This document shows, piece after piece, positions 8,477 through 53,294 of a DNA stretch of 64,000 nucleotides (its first letter is position 1; every line of letters begins with the position of its first letter). The stretch lies in sequence record NC_070966.1. One strand, given 5' to 3'. The position numbers were made by a program, and so were the translations under genes. Below the pieces are notes generated by a model. That model made no database searches and had not been told where the DNA came from. It saw only the letters and a list, made by a program, of their open reading frames with translations.

Positions 8477-9436
8477 ATGATTATTTTAGGAGCAGGTCTG
8501 GCTGGTACATTAGCTGGACTAATTAATCCTCAGGCTTTGATCTTAGAAGGATCAAAGTCCGTTGACGATATGAGAATGCATAAAGCTGTTCTTAGATTCA
8601 GAGACGATAAGATCGGTAAATTGACTGGCGTACCTTTTACTAAGATCAAGGTCCGTAAGTCAATTCATATCGACAATAAAGACTATTTGGAATGCACTCC
8701 TCGACTAGCGAATATGTATTCGAAGAAAGTCACTGAAGGATATTCAGATCGTTCGATCTGGAATCTAGAGACTAGCGATCGATTCATTGCTCCTACGAAT
8801 TTCCATGAGATTCTTATGAGCTACTGTGGTGATCGTATCAAGTTCAATCATAGTGTCACTGCAATCAAGTCAGATATGATTTATGCAAAAGACGATGTAA
8901 CGATTGAACGAGATGATGCTCCTATCGTTAGCACACTACCAATGCCTCTTCTAGGTCGTGTCATTGGTAAGCCATTCGACATCAAGTTCGAATCTAAGCA
9001 GATCAAGGTCTCTCGCTACAAGGTGAAAGGTGCCAAGATCAATCAAACGATCTATTTCCCAGGAACTGAGACACTTGCATATCGTGCATCGATGGTTCAA
9101 GATATTCTGATTATCGAGAAGATTGAAGACGATAGTGGAGCAATTAACGATCGAGTTGATGATGCGTATATTATCAATGCGTTCGGTCTAGATACTCTTG
9201 ATGTTGAATTCATTGAAGATGCATCTCAGCTTGGTAAGATCACAGCAATTGATGAGAAGGTTCGTAAGAATTTCATCTTCAATGTGACACGTGATCTGAA
9301 TGTATACTCATTAGGTAAATTTGCATTGTGGAAAAATCACACGTTATTGGATGACGTTTATGATGACATATTCAAGATTAAAACTTATATGTCAGGTACT
9401 GATTACGATAGAATGAAATCAAGTTTTGGTAATTGA
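8477..9436 (+). CDS. FAD/NAD(P)-binding oxidoreductase-like protein
   Basis: N-terminal Rossmann motif IILGAGLAG and C-terminal VYSLGKFALW. Confidence 0.75.
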   Translation: MIILGAGLAGTLAGLINPQALILEGSKSVDDMRMHKAVLRFRDDKIGKLTGVPFTKIKVRKSIHIDNKDYLECTPRLANMYSKKVTEGYSDRSIWNLETSDRFIAPTNFHEILMSYCGDRIKFNHSVTAIKSDMIYAKDDVTIERDDAPIVSTLPMPLLGRVIGKPFDIKFESKQIKVSRYKVKGAKINQTIYFPGTETLAYRASMVQDILIIEKIEDDSGAINDRVDDAYIINAFGLDTLDVEFIEDASQLGKITAIDEKVRKNFIFNVTRDLNVYSLGKFALWKNHTLLDDVYDDIFKIKTYMSGTDYDRMKSSFGN

Positions 9437-10086
9437 TGTTTTATGTTATCTATAAAATAACTAATAATATTAATGGTAAAATTTATATCGGAGCTCATAG
9501 AACTCATAGTTTAACTGATACGTATATGGGATCCGGAAAATATATAAAAAGAGCTATTGATAAGTATGGTCGGAAAAACTTCTCGAAAGAAGTACTATTC
9601 AGTTTTGATAATTCAGAAGATATGTATAATAAGGAACGAGAAATCGTTAATGAAGAGTATCTTCAATCACATGGTCACTATAATTTAAGAGTAGGTGGTC
9701 TAGGTGGATTTGATCATATCAATGACAAAATTAGTAAAGATCCTGAATTTAAACAGTCTATTATAAAGAAGATTGCGAATTCTAATCGAGGGAAGCCTCG
9801 TACTGAAGAATTTAAATTAAAAGTATCTCTTCAGCATAAAGGTAAAACTGTTTCAGAAGAGTCTCGTAAGAAAATGAGTGATGCTCATAAAGCGAGAAGA
9901 TCTAATCCTAATTATGTCGACAAAAGAGTATGGTCTGAAGAGTCTAAACGTAGTTCAGGTAAACATCGTCGAGGATCTTTATGGATTACTAATCCAGATC
10001 TTAAGATAAATAAATTCATTAAGACAGATCTTGAAACTTATCTATCAAATGGATGGGTCAGAGGTCGAGGTAGTTACAATGCATAG
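9436..10086 (+). CDS. GIY-YIG homing endonuclease (Seg-like, NUMOD3-type tail)
   Basis: VIYKITNNINGKIYIGAH, YMGSG, basic repeats (SEESRKKMS). Locally more AT-rich. Confidence 0.9.
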   Translation: MFYVIYKITNNINGKIYIGAHRTHSLTDTYMGSGKYIKRAIDKYGRKNFSKEVLFSFDNSEDMYNKEREIVNEEYLQSHGHYNLRVGGLGGFDHINDKISKDPEFKQSIIKKIANSNRGKPRTEEFKLKVSLQHKGKTVSEESRKKMSDAHKARRSNPNYVDKRVWSEESKRSSGKHRRGSLWITNPDLKINKFIKTDLETYLSNGWVRGRGSYNA

Positions 10087-10360
10087 AAACGTTGAAGAGA
10101 TCGTTAGATCATCCTTCGACGGATCGAAATGTCCAGTATTTCTGGAGAGACATATGAGAGTCTCTCCAGATGGTCAAAGACTTGCTCGAATTATTATGAA
10201 CAAGTTTGATATTTTCGATACGAACGAAGTCTCTTATAATCTCGTAGAATATTACAATCCAGAAGGTGGTGAGGAATCATTTCTCATTCACATTAAAGAT
10301 GACAAGGATGTCTATTTCGATATCCAGGTACCTTCTAAGGCTATTTCTAGTTATATCTGA
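10079..10360 (+). CDS. Hypothetical protein
   Basis: ATG 10079 after GAGGT. Confidence 0.7.
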   Translation: MHRNVEEIVRSSFDGSKCPVFLERHMRVSPDGQRLARIIMNKFDIFDTNEVSYNLVEYYNPEGGEESFLIHIKDDKDVYFDIQVPSKAISSYI

Positions 10361-10368
10361 AAGTCATT

Positions 10369-10941
10369 ATGAACCATATTATGTTAGACTTTGAGACACT
10401 CGACACTAAACCTAGTGCAGTCGTGATGTCCGTAGGTATCGTTGCATTTGATCCCCTAGCTAACGATACCATTGAAACCCTCCGTAATGATCCTCACAGA
10501 AAATTGTATCTAAATCTGCAATTCGATGATCAGATCAAAAATGGTCGTACTATATCAGAAGATACGATCAGATGGTGGTTCGAGGATAAACTTGCAGAAG
10601 CTCGATCCAAACTCAAAAGTACTGATCTTGTAAGTACTCCATTAGCTCTGACTCTAATCGATAACTTTATTCTGAAACATGATATCAGATACAGTTGGGG
10701 TAATGGATCTGACTTTGATAATGCGATCTATGACGATCTTCATCGTACGTTTAATCGTCTTAATCGCATTAAGTATAAGAACAAGAGATGTGCTCGTACG
10801 ATTTTCGGTATGACTAAGAAAAAGTATAATCCTAAGGATTATAATATTCTCGAACATGATGCAATTGAAGACTGTTACTTTCAAATCCTTCGTCTTCAAG
10901 ACATGTTCAGAAATCATCTCACAGGAATCGATTTCTCATGA
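10369..10941 (+). CDS. 3'-5' exonuclease (DEDDh, DexA/Rv2179c-like)
   Basis: MLDFETL, WGNGSDFD, HDAIED. Confidence 0.85.
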   Translation: MNHIMLDFETLDTKPSAVVMSVGIVAFDPLANDTIETLRNDPHRKLYLNLQFDDQIKNGRTISEDTIRWWFEDKLAEARSKLKSTDLVSTPLALTLIDNFILKHDIRYSWGNGSDFDNAIYDDLHRTFNRLNRIKYKNKRCARTIFGMTKKKYNPKDYNILEHDAIEDCYFQILRLQDMFRNHLTGIDFS

Positions 10942-11306
10942 TACTATTCATGCATGAAGATGGATCCTACTACAGTAGTGAAGAGATCTTCCAAGACATT
11001 CATACTAATATTGATACTTCAGATGAGGGATCTTTTCTGCTCAAGTATCTTGAGAGAGGATTTGAACCTCCTGCAGATGCTACCTCTGAGACAAAGTATG
11101 AGTATCATCTTGCCAAAATTGGATTTGGTCGATGGATCCGTAACTCATACGGTCTATGGCAAGAAGATAATCCTCATGTCATACTGAATCCTTCTCCAAA
11201 TGACGAAGGTATCATTGATCATCCACTATTTCCAGACAATCTTAGTGGAACTATAATCAATAGATTGATCCAGCACTATCAGTCTAAGCTTCCTCAGGCT
11301 TCATGA
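10938..11306 (+). CDS. Conserved hypothetical protein (DUF6794-like)
   Basis: GRWIRNSYGLW...HP..PDNLS pattern. Confidence 0.55.
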   Translation: MILFMHEDGSYYSSEEIFQDIHTNIDTSDEGSFLLKYLERGFEPPADATSETKYEYHLAKIGFGRWIRNSYGLWQEDNPHVILNPSPNDEGIIDHPLFPDNLSGTIINRLIQHYQSKLPQAS

Positions 11307-11314
11307 GCCTTCCT
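11306..11314 (+). promoter_or_regulatory. Motif class A, 3' element only (AGCCTTCCT)
   Basis: Intergenic. The upstream pentamer is not conserved. Confidence 0.4.
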
Positions 11315-11330
11315 TGTTATCGAGCATCAA

Positions 11331-11843
11331 ATGATTTGTGAATTCTGTAATATCCGAAATAGGGTATTCTACAATAAGTCTAAAGGATATGCTAAGACTT
11401 GTGGTGATAAGTCTTGTATGTTTAAGATGAGATCTCGGATGCAGTCAACTAGAGATAGATCTCATGAAAATTATTCTGATAGAATAACTAAGCTTCATAG
11501 CACTGAAGCTATTCTTAAATCAGTAAAATCTAGAGGTCACGAGACTTGGACACTACTCGAAGATAATCTTAAAATTTATTTACCGTACTTCGTAGGTATG
11601 CATAATAGAGTTAGAGACGGTAAGTCTCCTTCTATAGAGTGGACTCGAACAATTGAAGGTCTTAAACTCTTTGTTGAACATATAGGCGAGATTCCAGCTC
11701 ATCTGAGTAAACCTTCTGTAGGTCGAATACGTCATGAAGAAGGATATATTGTAGGTAATGTTCAATGGGATGAGTATTCTTGGAATAGTGTAAAGAGACG
11801 AGGTACTCGTTATGTTAATGAAACCAGCACTCATAGGTTATAA
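11331..11843 (+). CDS. Putative HNH-type homing endonuclease
   Basis: SVGRIRHEEGYIVGNVQW resembles the S.DRID...GY..GNV.W motif. N-terminal CxxC pair. Confidence 0.55.
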   Translation: MICEFCNIRNRVFYNKSKGYAKTCGDKSCMFKMRSRMQSTRDRSHENYSDRITKLHSTEAILKSVKSRGHETWTLLEDNLKIYLPYFVGMHNRVRDGKSPSIEWTRTIEGLKLFVEHIGEIPAHLSKPSVGRIRHEEGYIVGNVQWDEYSWNSVKRRGTRYVNETSTHRL

Positions 11844-11845
11844 TT

Positions 11846-12646
11846 ATGGTAAGTAGAGCTGTTCCTAATGTCCGACTTCTGCAGTCGACTCAGAAAGCTA
11901 AAGAACTACTAGTATTTAGTAAGAATACTAGACTGACAATGACAGCCAATATGTATGACGATATCGTCAATCGTAAGGATCAGTGGACAGAGGAGAAGAT
12001 CGACTCTGAACTTGATTATATGGCTAATACAATTCCTAGTAGTTGGGAGTTCTGTGATCTGTATTTTATTATCACAGGTGTCTCTCGAGCATTCACGCAT
12101 CAGTTTGTTAGAAATCGTACTAACTCTTATGCACAACAGACAATGAGAGTTCTGGATATGTGCGAGTTTGATTATGTCTTTACTCGACCATATACTGATC
12201 TTCCGACGGATCGAGATCCGACTAAGGAAGAACTCATTAATATGTCTTATGACTTCCATACTAATAAAGCATTGGAAGAAGTCCAGAAGAGATATAATGC
12301 TATGATTGAGGATGGCGTACCTGCAGAAGATGCACGAGGCATTCTCCCTACGAACATCGCTACCAACATTCTTGCGAAGATCAATCTTCGTACGTTTGCT
12401 GATATGGCTAAGTCTCGTACAGGTGGACGTACTCAAGGTGAGTACCAGATGATCATGAATCAGATGGTTGATGAAGTTCTGAAGGTACATCCATGGGCTG
12501 AGAAATTCTTCTTTAAGCAGGGTCGAGATTACTTCAAGGATCTTGAAGATCTATGTGCTGAAATCTTTGGGTCTGGTACAACCAAAGAGAATCTGCATAC
12601 TAAGGGTCGATTCTTGAAAATTATCGACAAGATGCGTAAAGGTTAA
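11846..12646 (+). CDS. thyX: Flavin-dependent thymidylate synthase family protein, variant motif
   Basis: SRAFTHQFVRNRTNSYAQQTMRV, ARGILP, NLRTF. Confidence 0.85.
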   Translation: MVSRAVPNVRLLQSTQKAKELLVFSKNTRLTMTANMYDDIVNRKDQWTEEKIDSELDYMANTIPSSWEFCDLYFIITGVSRAFTHQFVRNRTNSYAQQTMRVLDMCEFDYVFTRPYTDLPTDRDPTKEELINMSYDFHTNKALEEVQKRYNAMIEDGVPAEDARGILPTNIATNILAKINLRTFADMAKSRTGGRTQGEYQMIMNQMVDEVLKVHPWAEKFFFKQGRDYFKDLEDLCAEIFGSGTTKENLHTKGRFLKIIDKMRKG

Positions 12647-12648
12647 TA

Positions 12649-12834
12649 ATGACAGAGAGATTTTATCGTACTAAACCTTCATCTGCTTTGACACGTCATG
12701 GTCGTGTAGTCTACAAACTTGTGAAAGTTTCTGTGACTGATGACTTTGATTATGCTAAATTTGAAGCAGATACTCCTGATTTTGCATCATGGGTCGATGA
12801 GTCTAAGTCGACTCCTATATTTGGAACTAACTGA
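12649..12834 (+). CDS. Hypothetical protein
   Basis: ORF chain. Confidence 0.65.
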   Translation: MTERFYRTKPSSALTRHGRVVYKLVKVSVTDDFDYAKFEADTPDFASWVDESKSTPIFGTN

Positions 12835-13596: not shown

Positions 13597-13600
13597 CATC

Positions 13601-14551: not shown

Positions 14552-14560
14552 TTTGATTCA

Positions 14561-14605: not shown

Positions 14606-14616
14606 TAGGCATGTAA

Positions 14617-15339
14617 ATGACAACGAATACTAGTGAGAAATCTCTGAAGAATGACATTGCTGTTAGTTCTCCAGATAAGAAGAGACTGACATTCGCTATC
14701 GACTTCGATGGCGTTATTTATCCATACAAGAATGGATATAACAATGGGCTCATGTCTGAAGATCCCATTCCAGGTGCTCGAGATGCACTGATTCACCTTC
14801 GCAATGAAGGTCATAAGATCATAATCAACACCTGTCGAGGTGCTGTAGAAGATCTTAAATCTTACTTCAATCTCCATGACATTCCATTCGATGAAATCAA
14901 TGAGAACTCAGATAACTATGAGGACTCAAATAAGGGTAAACCTTTTGCTGATTATTACATCGATGATCGAGCTATTCGATTCGAAGGCGATTGGTCCCTC
15001 ACATTAGATGAGGTACGTCGCAAGAGATTCCCATGGTTCATTAAGTCTGAGAATAAGATTGCAGCAGATCTTATGAATGACTCAGCAGAACTGTATCGAC
15101 AGCGTAATCTTGTTTATGGCGACTCATACCGTCGTCACGGTGAGATTATGGCTAAACTATTTCCTAATGGCGTAACCTTGAAGACAGCCGAAGATTTTAA
15201 TCGATTCGGTATCGTTAACATGAAGATTTCTAAGGTTACAAGATATTGTCAGAATTTTGAGAAGGGTGGTCATCTTGACTCAGTGATCGATGATGGTGTT
15301 TATACCTTCATGCTTGCTGAGCTTGATATGTCCAAGTAG
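14617..15339 (+). CDS. HAD-family phosphatase fused to a putative all-alpha dNTP pyrophosphohydrolase (DUF6378/DUF1599-like)
   Basis: N-terminal IDFDGVI...KPFADYYIDDRA. C-terminal RNLVYGDSY...K..R...DS..D..VY. Confidence 0.65.
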   Translation: MTTNTSEKSLKNDIAVSSPDKKRLTFAIDFDGVIYPYKNGYNNGLMSEDPIPGARDALIHLRNEGHKIIINTCRGAVEDLKSYFNLHDIPFDEINENSDNYEDSNKGKPFADYYIDDRAIRFEGDWSLTLDEVRRKRFPWFIKSENKIAADLMNDSAELYRQRNLVYGDSYRRHGEIMAKLFPNGVTLKTAEDFNRFGIVNMKISKVTRYCQNFEKGGHLDSVIDDGVYTFMLAELDMSK

Positions 15340-15720: not shown

Positions 15721-16218
15721 ATGACTAAATCAATTAAAGTTAAAGTAATTAATGAATCTACTACCAATGCTCTTCCAGCTTATGAGACTGAAGGTTCCGC
15801 AGGTATGGACCTCAGAGCTCATATCAATGGCGACAGTCCATTCTCGAAGATTGTTAAGATCGAGAACAAAGAAGAGCATGTAATTGATATCGCTCCAGGT
15901 GAGCTACGTCTCATCTCTACAGGACTCAAAGTTGAAATCCCTGTAGGTTATGAACTTCAAATTCGTCCACGTAGTGGACTAGCTTATAAGAATATGGTAA
16001 CAGTACTGAATAGTCCTGGTACCATTGACTCTGATTATCGAGGAGTAGTCGGAGTACTTTTATTCAATCATCATCCTAGTACAGTTTTCAGAGTCAGGAA
16101 TGGTGAGCGTATCGCTCAGGCAGTTTTTGCTGAGTATGTACGTGCTGAATATGATAATGTAACTGATCTGAGTGCCACTGATCGAGGAGAAGGTGGATTC
16201 GGAAGTACTGGTAAATAA
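15721..16218 (+). CDS. dut: dUTPase (trimeric)
   Basis: [34 protein letters not shown]. Confidence 0.97.
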
Positions 16219-28441: not shown

Positions 28442-28758
28442 AGTCTAGTAATCTATCTGCTGTCATAGAGCTCATGGATCTGAAAGAGAAGCTTAGACAT
28501 CTAAGTGACTCAGAACATGGATTCATTAGAGTCGAGGTAGGTCAAGATAGTAGATGTAACTTCTTCAAAGATGGAAGTGCAAGTGTAGAAAGTGATTACG
28601 ATGACGACGATGATGATCGTGTGATCCTGTCTAAGTCTAATTCTAAGCACAAGAAGATATCTTTCGACATCTACACTCGCATTATACAGGTATTGCAGGA
28701 CTCTATCTCGGACTGCAACGTGGCTCTCAAACAACTAGGAGTTGAGATTGATGACTAA
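28438..28758 (+). CDS. Hypothetical protein
   Basis: GTGA-coupled ORF. Confidence 0.65.
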   Translation: MKSSNLSAVIELMDLKEKLRHLSDSEHGFIRVEVGQDSRCNFFKDGSASVESDYDDDDDDRVILSKSNSKHKKISFDIYTRIIQVLQDSISDCNVALKQLGVEIDD

Positions 28759-29866
28759 TAATTCATTTGCAGATCGTCTTTCTAAGGTAACTACAGTACC
28801 TCCTCCAGCACCTGTAGGTAATCTACCTGTAGCTAAGCCAGCAGGGTTCTCAGGGATCAAGTCTAATACCAATTCTGATCTCGTTTACAAGAGTGTTGTT
28901 ACCAAGGATGACATCGAGAATCTTGGTAAGGATATTGGTCGATCTGTAGGTGAAACTACTGAGAAGATCGTTCAGAAGGTTGCTCTCAGTAACTTCGGTG
29001 ATCTAGGAGCTATCCTCGCTCAAGTTCAAGCTGAAGCTGATAAGCTGGATCCTAATGCACAATTCTCAGGTGTAGGTGGATGGATTAAGTCCAAATTCAA
29101 GGACATTAAATCCGTACTCATTCAACAGTTGAATAGCGCTAGTAAAGTATTTGATGATCTTGAAGTGAAGATCGCTGACAATATCGCTGTTCATCAAGAG
29201 TGGGTAAAGGATTTGGATCTCCTATACAAGGAGAATTACAATCACTTTAAAGCTATTAATGCACTCATCGTCAAGGCTACTGAGTGGAAGGCTATGATCG
29301 AAACTCAGATCAAGAATCTGCCTCCGATCGATCCTAATGATCCTGAAGCTATGATGAAGGGTGAGCTCATTCGAGAACTCGAATCTCTGAAGAACCGTGC
29401 GGCTATCAAGCTCGACAACTTCACGAGACTTCGTATTATCTCGGAGAGTAATGCTCCTAAGATCAAGAGTCAGTCTGAGACATCTGAAACGACTATCATG
29501 ACTCTTCGTGATCTCATGGAACAAGCCATTCCGATGATCAAGATGGAATTTGCACTCTATCTCCAATCAATGGCATCTAAGTCTTCGCAAGATCTGATCA
29601 AGAATGGTCGTAATCTTGCTAATCAGACGCTGAAGAGATCTGCTGATGCAGCACATGATGCAGCTATCACTTCAGCTACTTCTCTGAACGACTCTATCGT
29701 TCAGACAGATACTCTGGATCACATCCGTAAGAAGATGCTTGATACTGTGCAGAATGTTCGTAAGATCCAGAGTGATGCACAGGCTAAACGAGATGCAGAT
29801 GCTAAGACTCTCAAGGAGAGTTCTGCAGCTTATCTCACTGAATTGCAGAAGAACAACGCTATCTAA
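28751..29866 (+). CDS. telA: Toxic anion resistance protein (TelA/KlaB family)
   Basis: Helical coiled protein: GGWIKSKF...QQLNSASKVFD...LDLLYKENY..IPMIKMEF; lies upstream of ter genes. Confidence 0.7.
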   Translation: MTNNSFADRLSKVTTVPPPAPVGNLPVAKPAGFSGIKSNTNSDLVYKSVVTKDDIENLGKDIGRSVGETTEKIVQKVALSNFGDLGAILAQVQAEADKLDPNAQFSGVGGWIKSKFKDIKSVLIQQLNSASKVFDDLEVKIADNIAVHQEWVKDLDLLYKENYNHFKAINALIVKATEWKAMIETQIKNLPPIDPNDPEAMMKGELIRELESLKNRAAIKLDNFTRLRIISESNAPKIKSQSETSETTIMTLRDLMEQAIPMIKMEFALYLQSMASKSSQDLIKNGRNLANQTLKRSADAAHDAAITSATSLNDSIVQTDTLDHIRKKMLDTVQNVRKIQSDAQAKRDADAKTLKESSAAYLTELQKNNAI

Positions 29867-29884
29867 CGAGGATAAATCATAGAT

Positions 29885-30598
29885 ATGACTAACGCTATCA
29901 CACTCGACCTCACCAAGAAGTTTGAACTCAATCTCGAGAAGGCTGGTATCACTCAGATTCCAGTTCTGGAGACTCGTCTCGCAGTAGATCGTTCGGGTTC
30001 TATGCAGGAAGAATTCGATGCAGGATGGGTTGATAAGACGATCAATCTCTTCATCGTAGCAGCTATGAAGTTCGATGACAATCAGTCTCTGGAAGTCGGA
30101 TTCTTCAATACTGAATTCACTCAGACTCCTGAAGCTCAGGCTAGTGATGTAGGTACGTATCTTAAGAGCAAGGCTCGTAATATTCGTCCGACATCTGGTA
30201 CGTATTATGCTCCGATCATCGAGAATCTCGAGTCTAAGATGTCAGCCTCTGCTCCGATTCAGGAGAAGAAGTCTGGATTCTTCGGATTCTTCAAAGGAGA
30301 CTCTTCTGCTCCAGCATCTAAGGAACGAGTAGCTAAGAACAAGGCATACGTTGGTGTTATCACTGACGGTGATCCAGGTGACAAGCGCAGCTTCGAGTCT
30401 GCACTTGCTAATACTTCTGGCGATACATTCTACCAGTTCATCGCTATCGGTAATCAGATCGATGCCAACTATCTGAAGGGACTGTCGAATCAGTACAAGC
30501 ATGTCTCCTTCATTCATCTGAAGGATCCTTACAAGGTGACTGACGACTCCTTCTACGAGAACCTCTGCAATGAGAAATTTGTAGCCTGGACGAAGTAA
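29885..30598 (+). CDS. vWA-domain protein (TerF-associated type)
   Basis: MIDAS AVDRSGSM, T(RPTSGT), ITDG. Confidence 0.85.
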   Translation: MTNAITLDLTKKFELNLEKAGITQIPVLETRLAVDRSGSMQEEFDAGWVDKTINLFIVAAMKFDDNQSLEVGFFNTEFTQTPEAQASDVGTYLKSKARNIRPTSGTYYAPIIENLESKMSASAPIQEKKSGFFGFFKGDSSAPASKERVAKNKAYVGVITDGDPGDKRSFESALANTSGDTFYQFIAIGNQIDANYLKGLSNQYKHVSFIHLKDPYKVTDDSFYENLCNEKFVAWTK

Positions 30599-30604
30599 TA
30601 CTCT

Positions 30605-30641
30605 AAGTAGTAGCTTCGTACCAGCGGAGCTACTACTTTTC
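30605..30641 (+). terminator. Putative intrinsic terminator
   Basis: AAGTAGTAGCT/AGCTACTACTT stem followed by TT. Confidence 0.6.
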
Positions 30642-30668
30642 ATTAATCTGGTAATCCTAGAGGGTTAA

Positions 30669-31706
30669 ATGTTTAAATATTTCGGTGGATCGTTCATTTT
30701 CGCAGCTGCAGCATTGATTGGACTGTATCTCTTTACAGGCAATCCTGCTGCTCTAGTGACAGCAGTTGTCCTCTCGATCGTAGAGGTAGCTGTTAGCTTC
30801 GATAATGCTATCGTAAATGCATCAATCATGAAGACGATGTCTCCTTTCTGGAAGAAGATGTTCGTTACAGTCGGTATGTTGTTTGCAGTAGGATTCATGA
30901 GACTATACTTCCCGATTCAGATCGTATCAGCAATTGGAGGTATCTCACTTCATGAAGCTGGTCATCTAGCTCTTGCTGAGCCTGATCGATTCTCTCACAT
31001 TCTTATCGAGTCTCATCACATCGTAGCTGGGTTTGGTGGTGCATTCCTTATGCTCGTAGCTTTGAAGTACTTTATCAATGCTGAGAAGGATGTCCACTGG
31101 GTACACGCTATTGAAGCACCTCTAGCATCTCTCGGTAAGCTTGATGAAGTCCAAGTTCTGATCGTAGCAGTTGTATCGTATATCCTTTCTCGCTATCTCG
31201 GAGATCATGGTACAGAGTTCTTCTATGCTGCTTTGATCGGTATCGGTACACATATTGTAGTTGATCTGATCAAAGAAACTCTGAGTCATATCGATACGTT
31301 TCTTGCTAAGGGAGCAGATGTAGCAGTCAAGGGTGGTCTTGGTGCATTCATCTATCTTGAAGTACTTGATGCATCCTTCTCGTTCGATGGAGTCATCGCT
31401 GCATTCGCTATCACCAATCAGATTGCAGTTGTAGCTGCCGGTCTTGGTATCGGTGCTATGTTCGTACGTAGTCTGACTCTCATGCTTGATGACAAGGATA
31501 CTCTCACAACTTTCCGATATCTTGAGAGTGGTGCATTCTGGGCTATCGGTGGACTTGCTGCATTCATGTACATCAGCACACTTGTACATGTCTCAGAGTG
31601 GATTATCGCAGGATTCTCTGCTGTAGTCATTCTCGTATCGTTCCTACATTCGATTAAGGCTAACAAGGATGAAGAACTCCTACAGCCTGTCCTCGAAATT
31701 CATTAA
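30669..31706 (+). CDS. DUF475/TerC-family integral membrane protein
   Basis: EVAVSFDNAIVNA, EVLDASFSFDGVI, YLESGAFWAI. Confidence 0.9.
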   Translation: MFKYFGGSFIFAAAALIGLYLFTGNPAALVTAVVLSIVEVAVSFDNAIVNASIMKTMSPFWKKMFVTVGMLFAVGFMRLYFPIQIVSAIGGISLHEAGHLALAEPDRFSHILIESHHIVAGFGGAFLMLVALKYFINAEKDVHWVHAIEAPLASLGKLDEVQVLIVAVVSYILSRYLGDHGTEFFYAALIGIGTHIVVDLIKETLSHIDTFLAKGADVAVKGGLGAFIYLEVLDASFSFDGVIAAFAITNQIAVVAAGLGIGAMFVRSLTLMLDDKDTLTTFRYLESGAFWAIGGLAAFMYISTLVHVSEWIIAGFSAVVILVSFLHSIKANKDEELLQPVLEIH

Positions 31707-31735
31707 CATTAACTCCTAGATAAGGATTTGGAGAA

Positions 31736-32320
31736 ATGATCGTGCTCGACCTCAATAAAGACGCAGGTATCGTACTGGATCTCAGCAAGGAAGATCCGTC
31801 TCTTGAAACTCTCAAGATCAAGCTGGACTGGAATCCTCATCCAGTTCATGGTGCTAGCCTGACGGATGGCTTCGATCTGGATATCTTCGCATATGTTCTC
31901 AATGAACAAGGTAAGATCACTAGCGGTTCTGATGTTGTATTCTTCAACAACAAGAATTTCGCTAATGGTGCTATTGTTCTTCCTAAGGACAACCGTACTG
32001 GTGAAGGTGATGACGATGAAGAATTGCTCATCACCACGTCTAAGATTCCTGCAGACAAGAAGTCTGTAGCTATCTATGTGACCATTCACAAGGCTACAGA
32101 ACGTGGTCATCACTTCGGTATGGTATCTGGAGCATCTCTTCAGTTCATCAATGCTGACTCTGGTAAGATTATTGCCAAGTATGACCTGACTGCCAACTAC
32201 TCTGGTAATACTGCATTCTTTGGTGGTATCCTTTCTGTTGAGAATGGTAAGGGTAAGTTCCAATCGAATGGTGAGGCAGCAGACGCTGATCCTAATCAGA
32301 TCGCTCAGTTGTACGTCTAA
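31736..32320 (+). CDS. terD: TerD-family protein
   Basis: FDLD, VVFFNN, DNRTGEGDDDE, HHFGMV. Confidence 0.9.
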   Translation: MIVLDLNKDAGIVLDLSKEDPSLETLKIKLDWNPHPVHGASLTDGFDLDIFAYVLNEQGKITSGSDVVFFNNKNFANGAIVLPKDNRTGEGDDDEELLITTSKIPADKKSVAIYVTIHKATERGHHFGMVSGASLQFINADSGKIIAKYDLTANYSGNTAFFGGILSVENGKGKFQSNGEAADADPNQIAQLYV

Positions 32321-32327
32321 CATTATC

Positions 32328-41140: not shown

Positions 41141-43396
41141 ATGGATCTCAATAAGTTCAAAGTAACTATCGGTGGTAAGTCTGTCAATGTGACCGCATTC
41201 ACTCCTGACACTACAGCTACCAAGGCTGCAGGTAAGACTCACCATGTCCTTCTCATCGACCGTTCCGGTTCGATGTACTCCTCGATCAGTTATCTGATTG
41301 ATCAGGTTCAGAATACAGTTAAGCTCATCGGTCAAGACGATCTGATTAGCATTCTCTGGTTCTCTGGTCAGGGTAGTAAGGGAGTTATCTGCCAAGGTGT
41401 TAAGGGATCTGAGGACATTACTACTGTTCTCAATAAGTTCCGTAGCGTTCTTGGTACGACATGCTTCTCTGAACCTCTCGCAGAGTCGACTAATGTTGTT
41501 GCTATGTACAAGGACGTTGTTGATCAGTCCGTTATCACTCTCTTCACGGACGGTTGCCCAGTAGTCAGCTGGTCTACTAAGGAAGAGACTGAACGTTGCC
41601 ACGAGATCATTAAAGATCTCGTTGATGATCTCAATGTCTCGGCAGTCAATACCGTAGGTTATGGTAACTACTACAATCGTGATTTCTTGCAGACTCTTTC
41701 CGAGGCATCGGATCAGGGGATGTTCGTTCACAGTAGTAAGATTGAACAATTTACTGACGTCTTCACCTCAGCAGTGGAGGTCGCCAGTGGTCTGGTACTT
41801 CAGTCTCTGGACATCGAAGTATCGGATGACGACGCTGATATTCTTTACGTAGGTAATGGTACCAGTGGTCTTCACAAGTCTGACCTCAGCATGCGTCGTC
41901 TTGACAAGTCTCGTAACCTTGTCTTCATCGTATCTGAGAATTCCAAGTACGATCTGACGATCAACGGTGTTACGGATCACAAGATTGAGTCCATGACTCA
42001 GTCCTCGAATCCTGAATTCGTTGAGAACTTCCTCTACTCGTATGCAGATTCTCTCTACTATCGTGGAGAACGTCAGAAGGCTCTTGACATTATTGTCAAC
42101 AATCTTCGCGACAAGCATCTCGCAGATCTGATGATGAATGCATTCACCATCGACGAAGTAGCTGATGTTCAGAAAGCTCTGAACATTGCATGTGAGTTCA
42201 AGTCTGAACGTTACATCAGTGGTAAGTGCGGAGTAGGATACCTTCCCAAGAAGGATGCATTCTGCTTGATGGATCTCTTTAATCTGTTCTTCAAGAAGGA
42301 TGTAACCGCATATTATGTCCCATTCTCGAAGAATGTTGAGGAGTACCAGCGTATCGGTCGTAAGGTAACCGATGAATTCAATCTGTTCACCAAGTCTCCT
42401 GAAGAAGTTATCGTACCACTGAACGACTTCGTCTGGAACAAGGACAAGCTGAATCTCTCGATCCGTATTCTGATCCCTGGTACAGTAACTCTCAATCCGA
42501 AGGCTGCTAAGACAGTAGGACTTGCTTCTACCTATCCGTCCAAGATCTATCGTAACCATACGTTTATCAAAGACGGTCAGCTGAATATTAAGACTGCAGA
42601 ATTCCTTCTGTCGTCTGATGTACTTGAAGTACTTAATGCGAATAAGATCGGTAACCGTATCCTGTCTACGGATGAGGATGTTGGTGGGATCCTTCTGAAT
42701 CGAGTAGTAGTCGATCTCACGAAGCTTCCTGTTATCAATCGTCTTTACATTGATAACTCCGACTCTCTGGATGATCTGAAGGATATTGTCGTCAATATCT
42801 CTAAGGCTGAGGCTTCCATCAAGGTAGCTAAGGATGCACTGGCAACCGTTCTGGCATCGAATGTGAATCTGACGAAGGTCGGAGCATATAAGGGTCTTAC
42901 GGCTGATCAGATCACCGTACTCGAAAATCACGGTATCTCCAAGGATGGAGTCTACGGAGGTATCGATAATGTCAAGCCTAAGGCTGCGGATTCAGATAGC
43001 TACGAAGTACGTACTCTCGAATTCTATCTGAAGGGATTCTCGTCGCTTCCTTCCATCGCTGACTTCAACAAGATGCTCAATGGTGAGAAGAGAGTGAATG
43101 CTCCTGGACAAATGATGATCGACTATCTGAAGGATCTTGAATTCCGACTGAAGGCCGAGAATCTTAGTCTGAATCAGCCGAATGCAGCTGTTAGAGACTT
43201 CCTTAATGAGGAACTCGAAGAGCTTAAGGCTGGCCTAGCTACTGCTCGTAATCATCTCAATGCTGTCAAGATGGCTAAGGTGCTTACACATGACTTCTTC
43301 CATGGTCTAGTTGCTGACGACAAGGGTAACTACTCTTATGGAGATGAGAATCATACTATGATTCTTCGTAATGACCGTACTGTAGAGTACGTTTAA
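41141..43396 (+). CDS. Large vWA-domain protein
   Basis: MIDAS LIDRSGSM, GTT, FTDG in the N-terminal 200 aa. Confidence 0.85.
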   Translation: MDLNKFKVTIGGKSVNVTAFTPDTTATKAAGKTHHVLLIDRSGSMYSSISYLIDQVQNTVKLIGQDDLISILWFSGQGSKGVICQGVKGSEDITTVLNKFRSVLGTTCFSEPLAESTNVVAMYKDVVDQSVITLFTDGCPVVSWSTKEETERCHEIIKDLVDDLNVSAVNTVGYGNYYNRDFLQTLSEASDQGMFVHSSKIEQFTDVFTSAVEVASGLVLQSLDIEVSDDDADILYVGNGTSGLHKSDLSMRRLDKSRNLVFIVSENSKYDLTINGVTDHKIESMTQSSNPEFVENFLYSYADSLYYRGERQKALDIIVNNLRDKHLADLMMNAFTIDEVADVQKALNIACEFKSERYISGKCGVGYLPKKDAFCLMDLFNLFFKKDVTAYYVPFSKNVEEYQRIGRKVTDEFNLFTKSPEEVIVPLNDFVWNKDKLNLSIRILIPGTVTLNPKAAKTVGLASTYPSKIYRNHTFIKDGQLNIKTAEFLLSSDVLEVLNANKIGNRILSTDEDVGGILLNRVVVDLTKLPVINRLYIDNSDSLDDLKDIVVNISKAEASIKVAKDALATVLASNVNLTKVGAYKGLTADQITVLENHGISKDGVYGGIDNVKPKAADSDSYEVRTLEFYLKGFSSLPSIADFNKMLNGEKRVNAPGQMMIDYLKDLEFRLKAENLSLNQPNAAVRDFLNEELEELKAGLATARNHLNAVKMAKVLTHDFFHGLVADDKGNYSYGDENHTMILRNDRTVEYV

Positions 43397-43401: not shown

Positions 43402-43451
43402 AGGCTCCATTATTCTTCTCGCAAGGGATGAGTAATGGAGCCTTTTCTTTT
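43402..43451 (+). terminator. Intrinsic terminator
   Basis: AGGCTCCATTA/TAATGGAGCCT stem followed by TTTCTTTT. Confidence 0.8.
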
Positions 43452-43469
43452 GTCTTATTGAGAGGTAAT

Positions 43470-44048
43470 ATGCATACCGCTGATCTAGAGAATATGCCAT
43501 CTCTGGTTCTCAATGCTGATATGTTACCCTTATCTTCTTCACCATTAAGCTTGTATCATTGGCACGATACGATCAAGGCAGTGACTGAAAATAAGGCTAG
43601 TGTAATAGCTGAGTACGACAGAGTTATTCGATCTCCTACATTTGAGATGAAGCTACCATCCGTGATAGCCTTGAACAACTATGTCGGAATCTATACCGAG
43701 ATTAAATTCACACGTTACAATCTATTTCTAAGAGATAAATTCACTTGTCAGTATTGTATGGAGAAGTTTGCTTACAAGAATCTTACGTTTGATCATGTCG
43801 TACCTGCATCTAGAGGTGGTAAGACAGTTTGGACTAATATTGTAGCAGCATGTCATCCTTGCAATATTAAGAAACGTGATAGAACTCCTGAAGAAGCAGG
43901 TTTGCATCTCCATTACAAGCCATATGCTCCTAACTATGAGCAGTTTAAACGTTTAGGTCGTCAAGATCCTGGTAAGAATCATTACGGTAATCTCCATAAG
44001 ACCATTATAGACTGGTTGTACTGGGACACAGAATTGGAATCAAAATAA
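43470..44048 (+). CDS. HNH endonuclease (McrA-like, alphaproteobacterial type)
   Basis: LVLNAD.LPLS..PLS, CQYC, TFDHVVPASRGG..W.NIVAACHPCN.KK, YWDTELE. Confidence 0.9.
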   Translation: MHTADLENMPSLVLNADMLPLSSSPLSLYHWHDTIKAVTENKASVIAEYDRVIRSPTFEMKLPSVIALNNYVGIYTEIKFTRYNLFLRDKFTCQYCMEKFAYKNLTFDHVVPASRGGKTVWTNIVAACHPCNIKKRDRTPEEAGLHLHYKPYAPNYEQFKRLGRQDPGKNHYGNLHKTIIDWLYWDTELESK

Positions 44049-48110: not shown

Positions 48111-48136
48111 ACTCATTTATAAATCGAGGAGTCAAT

Positions 48137-50083: not shown

Positions 50084-50085
50084 CA

Positions 50086-50985
50086 ATGAACGATTTTAAT
50101 GTAATCCTTACAGGTTCTGCTGGTTACATTGGAAGCATCGTTGGCGATCGTCTACTGAAATCCAATTCGATTGATTTGGAGACAGTAGACGTCGTCTCTG
50201 ACGTTCTTCCAGTAGATACTATCTTAACTGAAGTTGGTAATCTATCCAACAAGTCATCTGATGTCCTTGTTCATCTTGCTGCAAAGATCTCAGTAGTCGA
50301 ATCTCATAAGCAAGCTCGTCAGTACTACGAGAACAATTGTAGTCAATTCCATGAGATGTTGAATGATCGTGGTAACTATTTCAAGCATGTTATCTATGCA
50401 TCCTCTTTCTCGATTTATGATTCTGATTTGAGTATCTATCCTCAGTCTGTCTATGCATCCACCAAATACGAAGGTGAATGGATTCTCAAGAGATGGGCTC
50501 AGATGACGAATCGAGATTATTCAATCCTACGATTTGCCAATCCAATTGGCGTTAGTCAATCACTTCACTCTCATATTGCAGACCGTATTCAATCGAGCTA
50601 TGCTAATGTTATGTGGAGACTTGCTCGATGCAAATTACTAGGTGAGATGTTCTACATTCATGATCTACCTGGTATGACACGTGATTTTTATCCCGTTGAA
50701 TGGATTGGATACGCTATCGATTGGATCGCGAAGAATGGTCCCGTAGGTACTGTAAATCTAGGTAGTGGTAAGCCTGTATCGGTTATGGATCTTCTTCAGC
50801 ATATCTGTGAGAAGTATAATATCAGTTACAAATATGTTCTACCACCTGAAGGTACTGCTCTAGGTATTACCAAGAAGGTTGATGTATTCAAAGAAGGTAT
50901 TCCTGATTTTGATACATACGATCCAGTTGTATATTGTGAGAAGTCGTTTTTAGATTATCTATCGTTGATTCAGAACGCGAACTAA
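50086..50985 (+). CDS. NAD-dependent epimerase/dehydratase (GalE-like SDR)
   Basis: TGSAGYIG, HLAAKISVVES, YASTK (YxxxK), LRFANPIG. Confidence 0.88.
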   Translation: MNDFNVILTGSAGYIGSIVGDRLLKSNSIDLETVDVVSDVLPVDTILTEVGNLSNKSSDVLVHLAAKISVVESHKQARQYYENNCSQFHEMLNDRGNYFKHVIYASSFSIYDSDLSIYPQSVYASTKYEGEWILKRWAQMTNRDYSILRFANPIGVSQSLHSHIADRIQSSYANVMWRLARCKLLGEMFYIHDLPGMTRDFYPVEWIGYAIDWIAKNGPVGTVNLGSGKPVSVMDLLQHICEKYNISYKYVLPPEGTALGITKKVDVFKEGIPDFDTYDPVVYCEKSFLDYLSLIQNAN

Positions 50986-51003
50986 CGCTAGATTAGCCTT
51001 CCT
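50977..51003 (+). promoter_or_regulatory. Motif class A GCGAA-N13-AGCCTTCCT
   Basis: Exact consensus upstream of the glycosyltransferase genes. Confidence 0.75.
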
Positions 51004-51030
51004 TCTCGTAGAATGAATAAGAGGATCACC

Positions 51031-51213
51031 ATGAAAGATCTACGTGAATTCAAATCTAAGCTTGATGCTAAGTTCGATACTCAGACATCTTGGGGTAAGA
51101 ATCAGATCAAGCAAGTCATCAATGATACTTATATTGAAATCATTGAAAGTAAAGTAGAAGGTACTATCGAGCAGTCGACTCCTTCTAATCGTATCGACGA
51201 AGACTCTAAGTAA
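51031..51213 (+). CDS. Hypothetical protein
   Basis: GAGGA RBS favours ATG 51031. Confidence 0.7.
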   Translation: MKDLREFKSKLDAKFDTQTSWGKNQIKQVINDTYIEIIESKVEGTIEQSTPSNRIDEDSK

Positions 51214-51235
51214 TTTTCTAGTCAAGGTTAACAAT

Positions 51236-52423
51236 ATGAATTTTCTTTATATCACAAGAAGCATTGATCCGCTAGCTGCTGATCATCGTCCTGAAGCATA
51301 TGATCGTTATCGATTCTATGCTCCGATGATGTCACGACTAGCTGAGATCGGTGGAGGTGACGTCTACCTTCAGACTCGTTATAATCCTAAGGATTATCGT
51401 CCTGGTGGTACGATTGAAAGAATGGAAAGAAATTTCCGTCTTCCTAAGAAGTACAAGACTGGTGATAAGATTGATATGATCGTATGTGCCATCTTCTGCC
51501 CAGACGATGACATTACATTCAATGAGGATCTGAACAAGTTTCGTCAGACTCTTGAAGATACAGGTGCTCCGTATATCTATCATGACTCTGACAAAGAATT
51601 CTCTACTCAGGACGATCAGCAAGATCTTTTCCATCCAGGAAATAAGAACTATTTCCTTCAGACAATATCTAAGCTTCCAGAGGATGATATTCTCCGATCC
51701 CGACTACGCTGCGTGGCTACGTCGGTTCCGGATGCAGATTATCATCAGATTCTGAAGGATAATCTCAAGGTCGATGTAACGTATCTACCTGCTACGTTCT
51801 GGGGAGACTGGAAAGATAAGTTTGGATACACTCCTCTTTCAGATCGTAAGTACGATCTGACATTCCTTCGTGACTTCTATCTGAATCCGAAGCGTTCAGT
51901 CATTTTGAAGAATCTTGGTACTGGTGTATCGGATATCAGTGTTCTTCTTGGATCTCGTAGTGGCGACCCTTCTAGTCGTGGAGGATACATCAGCCATAAG
52001 GTTCCGACGATTGATTTTGATCAGATGCGTCAAGGAGCTACGTACAATGATCTATCGAAGTACATGTCTAAGTCTCGTCTGACTCCGTCTACGAGTATTT
52101 ATATGCGTGTCACTTCTAAGCTATTCGAAGCAGCTGAGAGTCGTACTCTAGCACTACTCTTCTCTCCGTGCTTCTATTCAGACGTAGTTGATCATCCTTC
52201 TGAGGCAGATGCTTATCTGAGTCAACTTGCTCTTGTAATTCCAGGATCCACTACTGTAAGTCAGTTGATTACACGTATTCGTAGTCTGACTGATGAAGAA
52301 TACTTGAAGCTTGTTGAGGTTCAGGATAAGCTCGTTGAGACTGTATTCAGTATCAAATCTGATTACATCACAGGCAAGCTGACCAAGATCATCACGGATT
52401 ATGTAGGTAATGTGAATGGCTAA
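51236..52423 (+). CDS. Putative GT-B glycosyltransferase (DNA beta-glucosyltransferase-like)
   Basis: C-terminal half YDLTF..., TSKLFEA, LITRIRSL..EEY....QD loosely resembles T4 BGT; next to the epimerase and GT-A genes. Confidence 0.45.
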   Translation: MNFLYITRSIDPLAADHRPEAYDRYRFYAPMMSRLAEIGGGDVYLQTRYNPKDYRPGGTIERMERNFRLPKKYKTGDKIDMIVCAIFCPDDDITFNEDLNKFRQTLEDTGAPYIYHDSDKEFSTQDDQQDLFHPGNKNYFLQTISKLPEDDILRSRLRCVATSVPDADYHQILKDNLKVDVTYLPATFWGDWKDKFGYTPLSDRKYDLTFLRDFYLNPKRSVILKNLGTGVSDISVLLGSRSGDPSSRGGYISHKVPTIDFDQMRQGATYNDLSKYMSKSRLTPSTSIYMRVTSKLFEAAESRTLALLFSPCFYSDVVDHPSEADAYLSQLALVIPGSTTVSQLITRIRSLTDEEYLKLVEVQDKLVETVFSIKSDYITGKLTKIITDYVGNVNG

Positions 52424-53294
52424 TGTTCTAGTTACTCTCATTACCAATCGACCAGATATTTCTTCGGAACGATGGATCGGTACCATCGGAAAGCTATCTA
52501 AGCTTTCCGAGTACCATGATATGACCTACTCGATTCTTCTACAACCTCCTTTTACAGTAGAAGACTGTGATAAAGTTCGTTCTCGAGTAGTTGAAGCACT
52601 CGGTCCTAAGAATCAGGTAGTCGTAGAGCATTTTATTAATCCTCCAGGTCCATTCAATTTTAGAACTGCTCGAAATCAGGCTATGTTGAATGTACCGTAT
52701 CTGAATACTTTTGACTACGTTCTTATCACTGACGATGACTTCAAGTTCAGTGGTCCTACTCCTAAGGGATATGACTCATGGGAACGTTATCATCAGGCTA
52801 TTAAGTATCTCGATGAAAACCGTCGATGCGGTGGTGTATTAATCAAAGGTATGTTTGGATCTCCTCCAGTCGATAAGGGTGGAAATGAGGTATCAAAGGT
52901 ACATGACGAGTACTACTCGACCAATCGAGGCATTCTTCATCGTAATGTGATGAAGTACGATAACGTAGATTGGATCTACTCAAATGAATGCTTCGATTAT
53001 CCTTCTGCTCTCGAGGATGCAGCAGCTTGTTTCTCTCGAATTGAGCTCGGCTACTATTATGCTCGTATCTGGAAGTCACCCACCACACCTCTTCCTGTGA
53101 AGCAGACATGTGCTGATGACATCCCTGATGACAATATCTACTCGCGACATATGGTCAATGAAGTAGGTATTGGTAAAGCTATCCGTGAACGTTACGACGA
53201 TCCTACATGGGAAGTCGATCAGAAGCGTATGCCTAAGAAACTCAACAATCTTAAACTCGAAGCCATGAACAATCGTGGATGGGTTGTAACCTAA
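52416..53294 (+). CDS. Putative GT-A (GT2-like) glycosyltransferase
   Basis: FRTARNQAM, YVLITDDDFKF (DxD), LEDA. Confidence 0.6.
   Translation: MANVLVTLITNRPDISSERWIGTIGKLSKLSEYHDMTYSILLQPPFTVEDCDKVRSRVVEALGPKNQVVVEHFINPPGPFNFRTARNQAMLNVPYLNTFDYVLITDDDFKFSGPTPKGYDSWERYHQAIKYLDENRRCGGVLIKGMFGSPPVDKGGNEVSKVHDEYYSTNRGILHRNVMKYDNVDWIYSNECFDYPSALEDAAACFSRIELGYYYARIWKSPTTPLPVKQTCADDIPDDNIYSRHMVNEVGIGKAIRERYDDPTWEVDQKRMPKKLNNLKLEAMNNRGWVVT

Follow-up and report, generated by a model that had tools for sequence, protein, structure and literature searches.

We analyzed a stretch of 64,000 nucleotides (the window) that is 100% identical to positions 62001-126000 of Rhizobium phage RHph_TM30, hereafter TM30 (NC_070966.1 / MN988521.1; 207,623 bp; Kleczkowskaviridae, Cuauhnahuacvirus). 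Window positions, which are record positions minus 62,000, are used throughout, and genes lacking a common name are called by their first window position. The central finding is that three of its gene products, namely a flavoprotein (8477), a variant of the flavin-dependent thymidylate synthase ThyX (11846), and a fusion of a HAD phosphatase with a DUF6378-type domain (14617), form a module that is conserved across phages and often translationally coupled. A preliminary description of the same DNA had proposed a ThyX-based route to a modified, sugar-decorated base encoded between positions 8477 and 53294. The reading that we favor, at slightly less than even odds (roughly 45%) and judging from sequence comparison, is that the module provides a ThyX-fold route to a C5-activated dUMP, which would then be decorated by lineage-specific enzymes.

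Conservation of the module across phages

The module was surveyed in 80 IMG/VR loci, all fetched by a flavoprotein homologue alone. A ThyX homologue follows downstream on the same strand in 76 of them, in many cases with a 4-bp overlap, and two of the four remaining loci end just after the flavoprotein gene. The first context viewed, an 80-kb phage contig, already displayed the arrangement, its flavoprotein gene overlapping the downstream Thy1 gene by 4 bp. A PNKP-type HAD phosphatase is encoded in 52 of the 80 loci and the DUF6378-type domain ("domain X") in 42, near PolIII-alpha and an epsilon-like exonuclease. Genes for SDR proteins (29/80) and methyltransferases (9/80) are interspersed in the module, as are genes of the 52416 family described below.

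Cultured phages give the same picture. The flavoprotein is found in 362 cultured phage records and a full-length TM30-type ThyX in 363, with equal genus counts in the two lists for Pseudomonas (292) and Escherichia (27). In the PB1-like phage KTN6 and the Wifcevirus FEC19 the gene order is flavoprotein, ThyX, and a HAD protein with domain X, the last having the architecture of TM30 14617. When the TM30 open reading frames (ORFs) were compared piecewise with Pseudomonas phage F8 (E < 1e-4), only five proteins were found in common: the flavoprotein (1e-47), ThyX (4e-36), the HAD-domain X protein (4e-8), an epsilon-like exonuclease, and an endolysin. Because the trio makes up the top three of these five, it appears to act as one functional unit that is passed on horizontally.

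The flavoprotein and ThyX genes are mostly adjacent or overlapping elsewhere, whereas in TM30 a homing endonuclease gene and several other small genes lie between them. One of these, a 170-aa ORF at 11331-11843 directly upstream of ThyX, has no Pfam match; a homologue (54% identity, 1e-29) occupies the same place in one IMG/VR locus (L043), and the ORF may be a further accessory component. We also noticed a DUF7873 gene (5681-6454) between flavoprotein and ThyX in locus L091 that is not present in the otherwise matching locus L090. Its product is 44% identical to TM30 gp357 (NC_070966 133927-134688), which is encoded in the tRNA region, and this suggests a mobile gene.

The variant ThyX

The preliminary description had noted a ThyX with an altered catalytic motif, and this is confirmed. 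The protein passes the family cutoffs (Pfam Thy1 4.8e-31, 108.5 bits vs a cutoff of 24.8) and lacks the signature RHR-x7-S(Q)RY together with the upstream E-H histidine: RNR replaces RHR, E-F (WEF) replaces E-H, and TMRV replaces SQRY. The motifs were compared with those of the M. tuberculosis and T. maritima enzymes and of phage ThyX proteins that have no flavoprotein partner. Of the 63 ThyX proteins with a partner, 61 have R-[T/S/N]-R in place of RHR, and V, T, or A takes the position of the SQRY tyrosine; in the aligned regions, every partnered ThyX that was read lacks both this tyrosine and the E-H histidine. A profile of 25 partnered sequences aligned with M. tuberculosis ThyX gives the same result, with E-H changed to E-F, the H-A…E-I segment changed, and all nucleotide-binding arginines kept. 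In contrast, E-H, RHR, and SQRY are all kept in the unpartnered ThyX of Bacillus, Clostridium, and Halorubrum viruses, as in M. tuberculosis ThyX. By their sequences, the partnered proteins are a distinct subfamily.

The altered residues are on the flavin/folate/NADPH side of the ThyX active site, where H53 and H79 of T. maritima ThyX and the RHR motif are located. The equivalents of T. maritima R78, R80, R90, R147, and R174, which bind the phosphate and uracil of dUMP, are aligned and conserved in TM30, which suggests that the substrate of the variant is still dUMP. Since the dUMP/uracil-binding arginines are kept, the reaction would give an analogue of thymidine and not a cytosine analogue of the T-even kind. 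Compared with canonical ThyX (T. maritima, M. tuberculosis, PBCV-1), the TM30-type protein thus has the same fold, family membership (Thy1, TIGR02170), and arginines, but differs in the replaced E-H, RHR, and SQRY residues (by F; N/T/S; and V/T/A, respectively) and in being strictly accompanied by a separate FAD-fold protein, a partner that canonical ThyX does without.

A second non-canonical "ThyX-like" group (E-F/A, RQR, S[M/T]RF; 366-439 aa) was seen in actinophages, including PLot (L100) and Sampudon (L102). In Microbacterium phage Hiddenleaf (L104, MN497954.1 33500-41500; genes 2763-3566, 3563-4882, and 5522-6031) the gene for a FAD "oxidoreductase" overlaps the downstream ThyX-like gene by 4 bp, and a MazG-like NTP pyrophosphohydrolase and a DnaE polymerase follow. 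The profile of the TM30 flavoprotein aligns with the Hiddenleaf oxidoreductase in hhalign (E = 3.6e-4), with the motifs G.PFKV and ISTxPxPLL in common; to judge by these sequences, the Hiddenleaf set may be a distant version of the flavoprotein-ThyX module.

The flavoprotein partner

The flavoprotein has 319 aa, carries GxGxxG at its N-terminus, and has no match in Pfam or NCBIfam; among the 778 detectable homologues of its family, none has a Pfam domain. An AlphaFold2 (AF2) model built from an alignment of 38 homologues has a predicted local distance difference test (pLDDT) score of 91 and displays a two-domain fold that combines a GxGxxG-bearing Rossmann fold for FAD binding with a substrate domain. 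Foldseek matched it to L-amino-acid oxidase, UDP-galactopyranose mutase (UGM), nicotine oxidoreductase, and monoamine oxidases (MAO) with E values of ~1e-12; the template modeling (TM) scores against UGM, L-amino-acid oxidase, and MAO are 0.6-0.69 when normalized to the query length, the protein being shorter than the matched PDB chains of UGM (466-517 residues). The name "flavoprotein", given in the preliminary description, is right because of this confident FAD-binding two-domain fold, and the RefSeq label "polysaccharide deacetylase" finds no support here.

Two related records, RHph_TM39 (L089, MN988559.1) and TM21B (MN988560.1), have no counterpart of window ~7585-11843, the flavoprotein gene included, and in TM21B the epimerase gene and the initial 39 codons of 51236 are apparently missing as well. 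We considered these as natural flavoprotein deletions and set the idea aside: an assembly gap and a real deletion look alike in these records, and the gap in TM39 is uninformative because that record is deposited as a "partial genome".

The HAD-DUF6378 fusion

The N-terminal domain of 14617 is a HAD phosphatase with a DFDG motif (PDB 2obb, 1e-4). The C-terminal domain X of ~100 aa belongs to phrog_4889 and is linked to DUF6378 through its relatives, DUF6378 matching 10 of 13 members with a best value of 3e-5. It is homologous to the C-terminal domains of KTN6 gp57 and FEC19 gp36 and also to stand-alone ORFs in 42 of the 80 loci. Of the HAD/pyrophosphohydrolase-like fusion proposed previously, the HAD part holds and the pyrophosphohydrolase part stays putative, the C-terminal domain matching DUF6378 only. 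An assignment of domain X to MazG or DUF1599 found no significant support in hhalign, with E = 0.84 for the Hiddenleaf MazG-like protein and E = 0.079 for a DUF1599-like C-terminus; PDB profile matches to POU domains are spurious.

Thymidine adducts in phages that carry the module

In the virion DNA of the Pbunaviruses F8 and 14-1, ~1/4 of T is replaced, at TG sites, by thymidine derivatives with masses of 362 and 390 Da (PMC12191111, 2025). The lighter nucleoside was read as derived from a tetrose sugar alcohol and the heavier from a cyclic aldopentose, and Pbunavirus was cited as lacking genes previously implicated in genome modification (PMC12191111). All characterized thymidine hypermodification pathways proceed from 5-hydroxymethyldeoxyuridine (5hmdU) made by a thymidylate-synthase homologue (PMC8989533), and the variant ThyX is the only such homologue to appear in the comparison of TM30 with F8. 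By our own arithmetic, 258 (5hmdU) + 122 - 18 = 362 for a tetritol and 258 + 150 - 18 = 390 for a pentose, from which we infer ethers or glycosides of 5hmdU. F8 and 14-1 have the trio of flavoprotein, variant ThyX, and HAD-DUF6378 in the same order as TM30, and their sugar and sugar-alcohol adducts are of the type that the preliminary description had proposed; the chemistry is that of F8 and 14-1, and the TM30 side of the comparison consists of genes. Our literature search found no paper that assigns genes to the Pbunavirus modification or links ThyX or this flavoprotein to it, and no report of TM30 DNA chemistry.

The 52416 family and the sugar-gene cluster

The candidate for sugar transfer in TM30 is 52416. 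Its family has an N-terminal hhhhPT[N/H] motif across three lineages and an invariant DxD (D106, D108). The GT-A glycosyltransferase named in the preliminary description is therefore retained in its motifs and not in any match to a known GT-A family. The only relative that an index of 5.8 billion proteins yielded (P0124, 32% identity) is encoded ~2 kb downstream of a flavoprotein-variant ThyX pair (L090/L091). In locus L056 the order is HAD, flavoprotein, ThyX, a 52416-like gene, and domain X, and the genes overlap at their junctions. When viral contigs were scanned without bias for the family itself, four loci came up, among them L106, which is the contig of L056. Upstream sequence is present in three of the four, and there the gene always stands beside ThyX or domain X; the fourth is cut at the 52416-like gene and continues with domain X. 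Homologues in or beside the module are thus present in five other lineages (L056/L106, L105, L108, L107, and L090/L091).

More distant members were found in two cultured phages, Streptococcus phage GXN1 and phiXF1. In GXN1 (L110, vB_SagM-GXN1, PQ819873.1) the member is a 337-aa ORF at 5971-6984, unannotated in the deposited record, which comes after PolA and before two annotated glycosyltransferases of ~390 aa, followed by an HD 5'-deoxynucleotidase; PolA and the deoxynucleotidase are homologous to TM30 gp339 and gp340, respectively. The GXN1 cluster is another candidate DNA-glycosylation cluster. Overall, the 52416 family is consistently found in DNA-replication and nucleotide-metabolism contexts, often inside the module; in TM30 the gene has moved 40 kb from the module, next to 51236 and the epimerase.

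The NDP-sugar epimerase predicted at 50086, directly upstream of the 51236/52416 group, is upheld at the family level, its match to the GalE model TIGR01179 (65 bits vs a cutoff of 262) indicating membership in the extended-SDR superfamily only. The same cannot be said of 51236, for which a BGT-like GT-B (a β-glucosyltransferase-like fold) had been proposed. Its relatives are confined to the TM30-group phages (by tblastn) and one metagenome protein (45% identity); an indexed search gave two related clusters, and phmmer against 1.84 billion representatives gave nothing outside its own cluster. Pfam, PHROG, and NCBIfam gave no match and a PDB profile search nothing relevant. The AF2 model has a pLDDT of 44, with a beta-alpha-beta pattern in its N-terminal half only, and Foldseek found nothing for this low-confidence model at E ≤ 0.001; hhalign against the GXN1 and phiXF1 neighbors was negative or uninterpretable. 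We therefore do not call it a glycosyltransferase, as the indexed search, the exhaustive HMMER scan, PDB profiles, AF2 with Foldseek, and hhalign all gave no support. Within the TM30 group, 51236 and 52416 are both 99-100% identical.

Other features of the window

Feature coordinates are collected in Table 1; the window genes are on the plus strand throughout, and the GC content of TM30 is ~40%.

Table 1. Features of the TM30 window discussed in the text
Feature	Window coordinates	Strand	Basis or remark
Nudix hydrolase	6105-6518	+	Pfam NUDIX 1.7e-17; phrog_1198
Class A promoter-like motif GCGAA-N14-AACCTTCC	8417-8442	+	Upstream of flavoprotein gene
FAD-fold flavoprotein (phrog_4828)	8477-9436	+	AF2 and Foldseek; conserved partner of variant ThyX
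Homing endonuclease	9436-10086	+	RefSeq annotation; between flavoprotein and ThyX genes
Variant ThyX	11846-12646	+	Pfam Thy1, TIGR02170; motif analysis
HAD phosphatase fused to DUF6378-type domain (domain X)	14617-15339	+	Third module component
Trimeric dUTPase	15721-16218	+	Pfam dUTPase 2.2e-24
Extended-SDR NDP-sugar epimerase/dehydratase family protein	50086-50985	+	Pfam Epimerase 2e-15
Class A promoter-like motif	50977-51002	+	Upstream of 51013, 51236, and 52416
Orphan 395-aa protein	51236-52423	+	3' end overlaps start of 52416
GT-A-like (DxD) protein	52416-53294	+	Alignments; family embedded in flavoprotein-ThyX module elsewhere
Class A promoter-like motif	56506-56531	+	Upstream of endonuclease (56561)-pyruvyl transferase pair
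Polysaccharide pyruvyl transferase family protein	57470-58372	+	Pfam PS_pyruv_trans (PF04230) 2.9e-16

The pyruvyl transferase predicted at 57470 also stands at the family level, with 60.6 bits for PS_pyruv_trans (gathering cutoff 25.3) and PDB profile matches to WbbZ (6x1l, 1e-26) and Pvg1 (5ax7, 0.016). In its likeness to WbbZ and PF04230 it belongs with enzymes that act on polysaccharides, and to our knowledge no member of that family acts on DNA. Among phages it was found in the TM30 group only, at 77-93% identity, though these phages are otherwise ~99% identical. Its gene lies directly downstream of a NUMOD3 homing endonuclease gene (56561-57469), and the divergence could reflect diversifying selection or endonuclease-driven exchange. 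Capture from the host was considered and rejected, the best bacterial relative being only 24% identical. Homing or HNH endonuclease genes are numerous in this phage, with further ones at 43428-44048, at NC_070966 2170-2868, and in the tRNA region.

The class A motif, which the preliminary description had placed upstream of the flavoprotein gene, the sugar genes, and the endonuclease-pyruvyl transferase pair, is real: GCGAA-N14-RCCTTCC has seven sites in the window against 0.09 expected, all on the plus strand and all intergenic. Only three of the seven are at the genes named there. As the motif also precedes unrelated genes at four places (2837, 26876, 41014, and 46043; genes at 2970/3155, 26957, 41141, and 46083), it is a general phage promoter class and not a pathway marker; its core AGCCTTCC alone was found upstream of further genes.

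TM30 encodes the usual supply chain for dUMP, namely dUTPase, dCMP deaminase, and RNR. The dUTPase and Nudix genes of the preliminary description are both genuine by their Pfam matches, the Nudix gene lying before the start of the proposed span, and the dUTPase likely supplies dUMP. For the epimerase, the pyruvyl transferase, the Nudix hydrolase, and the dUTPase, a role in DNA modification is pure conjecture. Most of the 45 kb of the span 8477-53294 consists of unrelated genes (RNR, helicases, Ter/vWA proteins, gyrase). The rest of the 50-63 kb neighborhood was likewise considered for modification genes and none is specific: an actin-like ParM/Alp7A protein (53859-54824, annotated "partition protein") and a DUF72 protein (55247-55975, 1e-55) are encoded between the GT-like genes and the pyruvyl transferase, and an AAA+ protein lies in the same neighborhood. 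A set of TerD-like "tellurite resistance" genes, two von Willebrand A (vWA) proteins, and a 1174-aa AAA+ (MoxR/dynein-like) ATPase at 28742-32323, 41141-43396, and 59433-62957 is unusual for a phage, and two of these genes are preceded by class A motifs.

Proposed pathway

The TM30 module, conserved and horizontally mobile, would carry out chemistry at pyrimidine C5; it is built from an altered ThyX, an obligate FAD-fold partner, and HAD-DUF6378. dUMP would come from dUTPase and dCMP deaminase. The variant ThyX and the flavoprotein would move the methylene group of methylenetetrahydrofolate (CH2-THF) to C5 of dUMP in a flavin-mediated reaction, yielding a hydroxymethyl or otherwise activated 5-methylene product (in the simplest case 5-hydroxymethyl-dUMP) instead of or alongside dTMP. 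HAD-DUF6378 would condition the nucleotide pool, and lineage-specific transferases would decorate the base once it has been incorporated into DNA. The candidate for this last step in TM30 is the DxD protein 52416, possibly joined by the orphan 51236, the NDP-sugar epimerase (donor supply), and the pyruvyl-transferase-family protein; in other phages it may be taken by the 52416 family (several metagenomic phages) or by SDR proteins and methyltransferases. We infer the chemistry, the individual protein roles, and the modification of TM30 DNA as such.

A bolder version, which we put forward tentatively and as clearly less likely than not, has the flavoprotein and variant ThyX as a two-component enzyme that makes 5-hydroxymethyl-dUMP or passes a 5-methylene intermediate to an alcohol or sugar acceptor. 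It would be the first hypermodified-pyrimidine route outside the ThyA fold and the source of the Pbunavirus adducts, and it would extend to over 360 cultured phages (therapeutic Pbunaviruses and Wifcevirus among them), to hundreds of metagenomic phages, and possibly, in distant form, to actinophages. The TM30 glycan would then be made by 52416, 51236, the epimerase, and the pyruvyl transferase.

Alternative explanations

A number of points weigh against a modification pathway in TM30. For this phage the support is comparative throughout. The module and the Pbunavirus modification are linked by correlation, and no homologues of TM30 52416, 51236, the SDR/epimerase, or the pyruvyl transferase were found in F8. 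Since ~3/4 of Pbunavirus T is canonical, a source of dTMP is still required there. The variant ThyX itself scores above the cutoff of the equivalog model TIGR02170 (102.2 vs 87.9 bits), and TM30, given its AT-rich genome and the lack of a second annotated thymidylate synthase, may simply need it for dTMP. The flavoprotein-ThyX and sugar-gene groups are 40 kb apart in TM30. Neither of the two presumed transferases is recognized by similarity: 51236 is the orphan described above, and 52416 has no match in Pfam, NCBIfam, or PHROG and no PDB profile match. GXN1 and phiXF1 have no flavoprotein or ThyX within 6 kb of the 52416-family gene. The core of the earlier proposal, a ThyX-fold modified-pyrimidine route with sugar decoration, nevertheless gains considerable independent support of a comparative kind (the module, the linkage of 52416, and the Pbunavirus chemistry), with the BGT unsupported and the promoter not specific to a pathway.

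The main and a serious rival, which we regard as somewhat unlikely, is ordinary dTMP supply. It holds that a ThyX without efficient self-reduction by NADPH (His to Phe, His to Thr/Asn) needs the flavoprotein as a reductase or flavin donor, that HAD-DUF6378 serves salvage, that the targets of the sugar genes (the epimerase, 51236, 52416, and the pyruvyl transferase) are not DNA but, for instance, virion proteins or surface polysaccharide of the host, and that the Pbunavirus hypermodification comes from other genes. The passed equivalog cutoff and the kept nucleotide-binding arginines agree with it, as do the flavin/folate-side location of the altered residues (by the T. maritima H53/H79 positions), the constant setting of the module among replication and nucleotide-metabolism genes, the usual dUMP chain of TM30, the AT-rich genome with no second annotated thymidylate synthase, and the three quarters of Pbunavirus T that are canonical; furthermore, the SGNH and pectin-lyase-fold proteins encoded in the TM30 tail-fiber region point to a polysaccharide as receptor. 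However, it leaves unexplained why GT-like (52416 family), SDR, and methyltransferase genes recur inside the operon, and it sits poorly with Pbunavirus, where the only thymidylate-synthase homologue is this variant and the adduct masses fit 5-hydroxymethyl-dU ethers. The GXN1 52416-family gene between PolA and an HD nucleotidase and a pyruvyl transferase without a close host relative also argue against it.

A narrower pathway, in which the module and the 52416 transferase modify TM30 thymidine while the remaining sugar genes (the epimerase, 51236, and the pyruvyl transferase) are auxiliary, have no part in it, and share a general promoter class by chance, appears quite unlikely. Comparative linkage to the module does exist for 52416 alone, the class A motif serves four unrelated genes as well, the neighbors of the sugar genes are heterogeneous (ParM/Alp7A, DUF72, AAA+), and the pyruvyl transferase evolves much faster (77-93%) than the GT-like genes (99-100%); but 52416 starts within the 3' end of 51236, the epimerase is directly upstream, and the 52416-like gene of GXN1 is likewise followed by two annotated glycosyltransferases of ~390 aa. 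We consider it highly improbable that TM30 modifies a base other than thymine. For cytosine the precedent is Rhizobium phage RL38JI (Pootjesviridae), in which dC is replaced by glycosylated 5-hydroxy-dC and the ThyA homologue has D169N (PMC13326640); that phage is from a different family, no ThyA homologue is annotated in TM30, and 5-hydroxycytosine of the RL38JI type was dismissed on these grounds. For adenine, as in the Z-genome phages with PurZ, the RefSeq name of TM30 gp019, "2-aminooxy adenylosuccinate synthetase", would speak in favor, yet gp019 (NC_070966.1 10623-11873, L003) scores only 30.5 bits against the PurZ model NF038379 (cutoff 300) and its PDB matches are to ordinary PurA; as a divergent PurA-like protein, it falls far short of the curated cutoffs for PurA and PurZ alike. 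The uracil-recognizing arginines kept in ThyX argue against both of these bases.

Relation to known systems

Our preferred ThyX-fold route to a C5-activated dUMP is closest in logic to the pathways of M6, ViI, PaMx11, SP10, and PhiW-14 (Lee et al. 2018, 2021; PMC8989533), which run from a thymidylate-synthase homologue through a C5-hydroxymethyl nucleotide and its incorporation to partial post-replicative decoration, and which have a similar nucleotide-metabolism gene neighborhood. Those phages use a ThyA-fold dUMP hydroxymethylase, a 5-hmdU DNA kinase, and transferases of the aGPT-Pplase type, whereas the only thymidylate-synthase homologue of TM30 has the ThyX fold with an obligate flavoprotein, and the known downstream enzymes are unannotated in it. 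With the T-even phages (gp42 dCMP hydroxymethylase, gp56 dCTPase, and the alpha- and beta-glucosyltransferases) TM30 would have in common the scheme of a modified dNMP, conditioning of the pool, and DNA glycosylation; it differs in that it has no annotated ThyA-fold enzyme, its modified base is probably U/T and not C, and no homologue of BGT or of the alpha-glucosyltransferase (AGT) was detected. RB69, DLP3, and RL38JI, which have glycosylated 5-hydroxycytosine (PMC13326640), offer a further parallel in a thymidylate-synthase-family enzyme with flavin chemistry, a C5-substituted pyrimidine, phage glycosyltransferases, and phage-encoded NDP-sugar tailoring, but they rely on a ThyA homologue (D169N) whose substrate is dCMP; TM30 is a phage of another family, and its enzyme has the ThyX fold.

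Hypermodification that starts from a thymidylate-synthase homologue is of a known kind, while a ThyX-fold root with an obligate flavoprotein and 52416 as the candidate transferase appear to be undescribed. Even if the reading is wrong, the module would amount to a two-component kind of flavin-dependent thymidylate synthase that has so far gone undescribed. Few phages are used as often in P. aeruginosa therapy as the Pbunaviruses, and for their recently reported hypermodification, to which genes are still unassigned, the module is a concrete and testable candidate. If the reading is true, the ThyX fold, like the ThyA fold, was recruited for DNA hypermodification, and the signature E-F / R-T/S/N-R / R-V together with the flavoprotein would predict modified genomes in isolates and metagenomes. 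It could also account for the unexplained restriction resistance in Wifcevirus, and the 52416 family would provide new enzymes that build carbohydrate-DNA conjugates.

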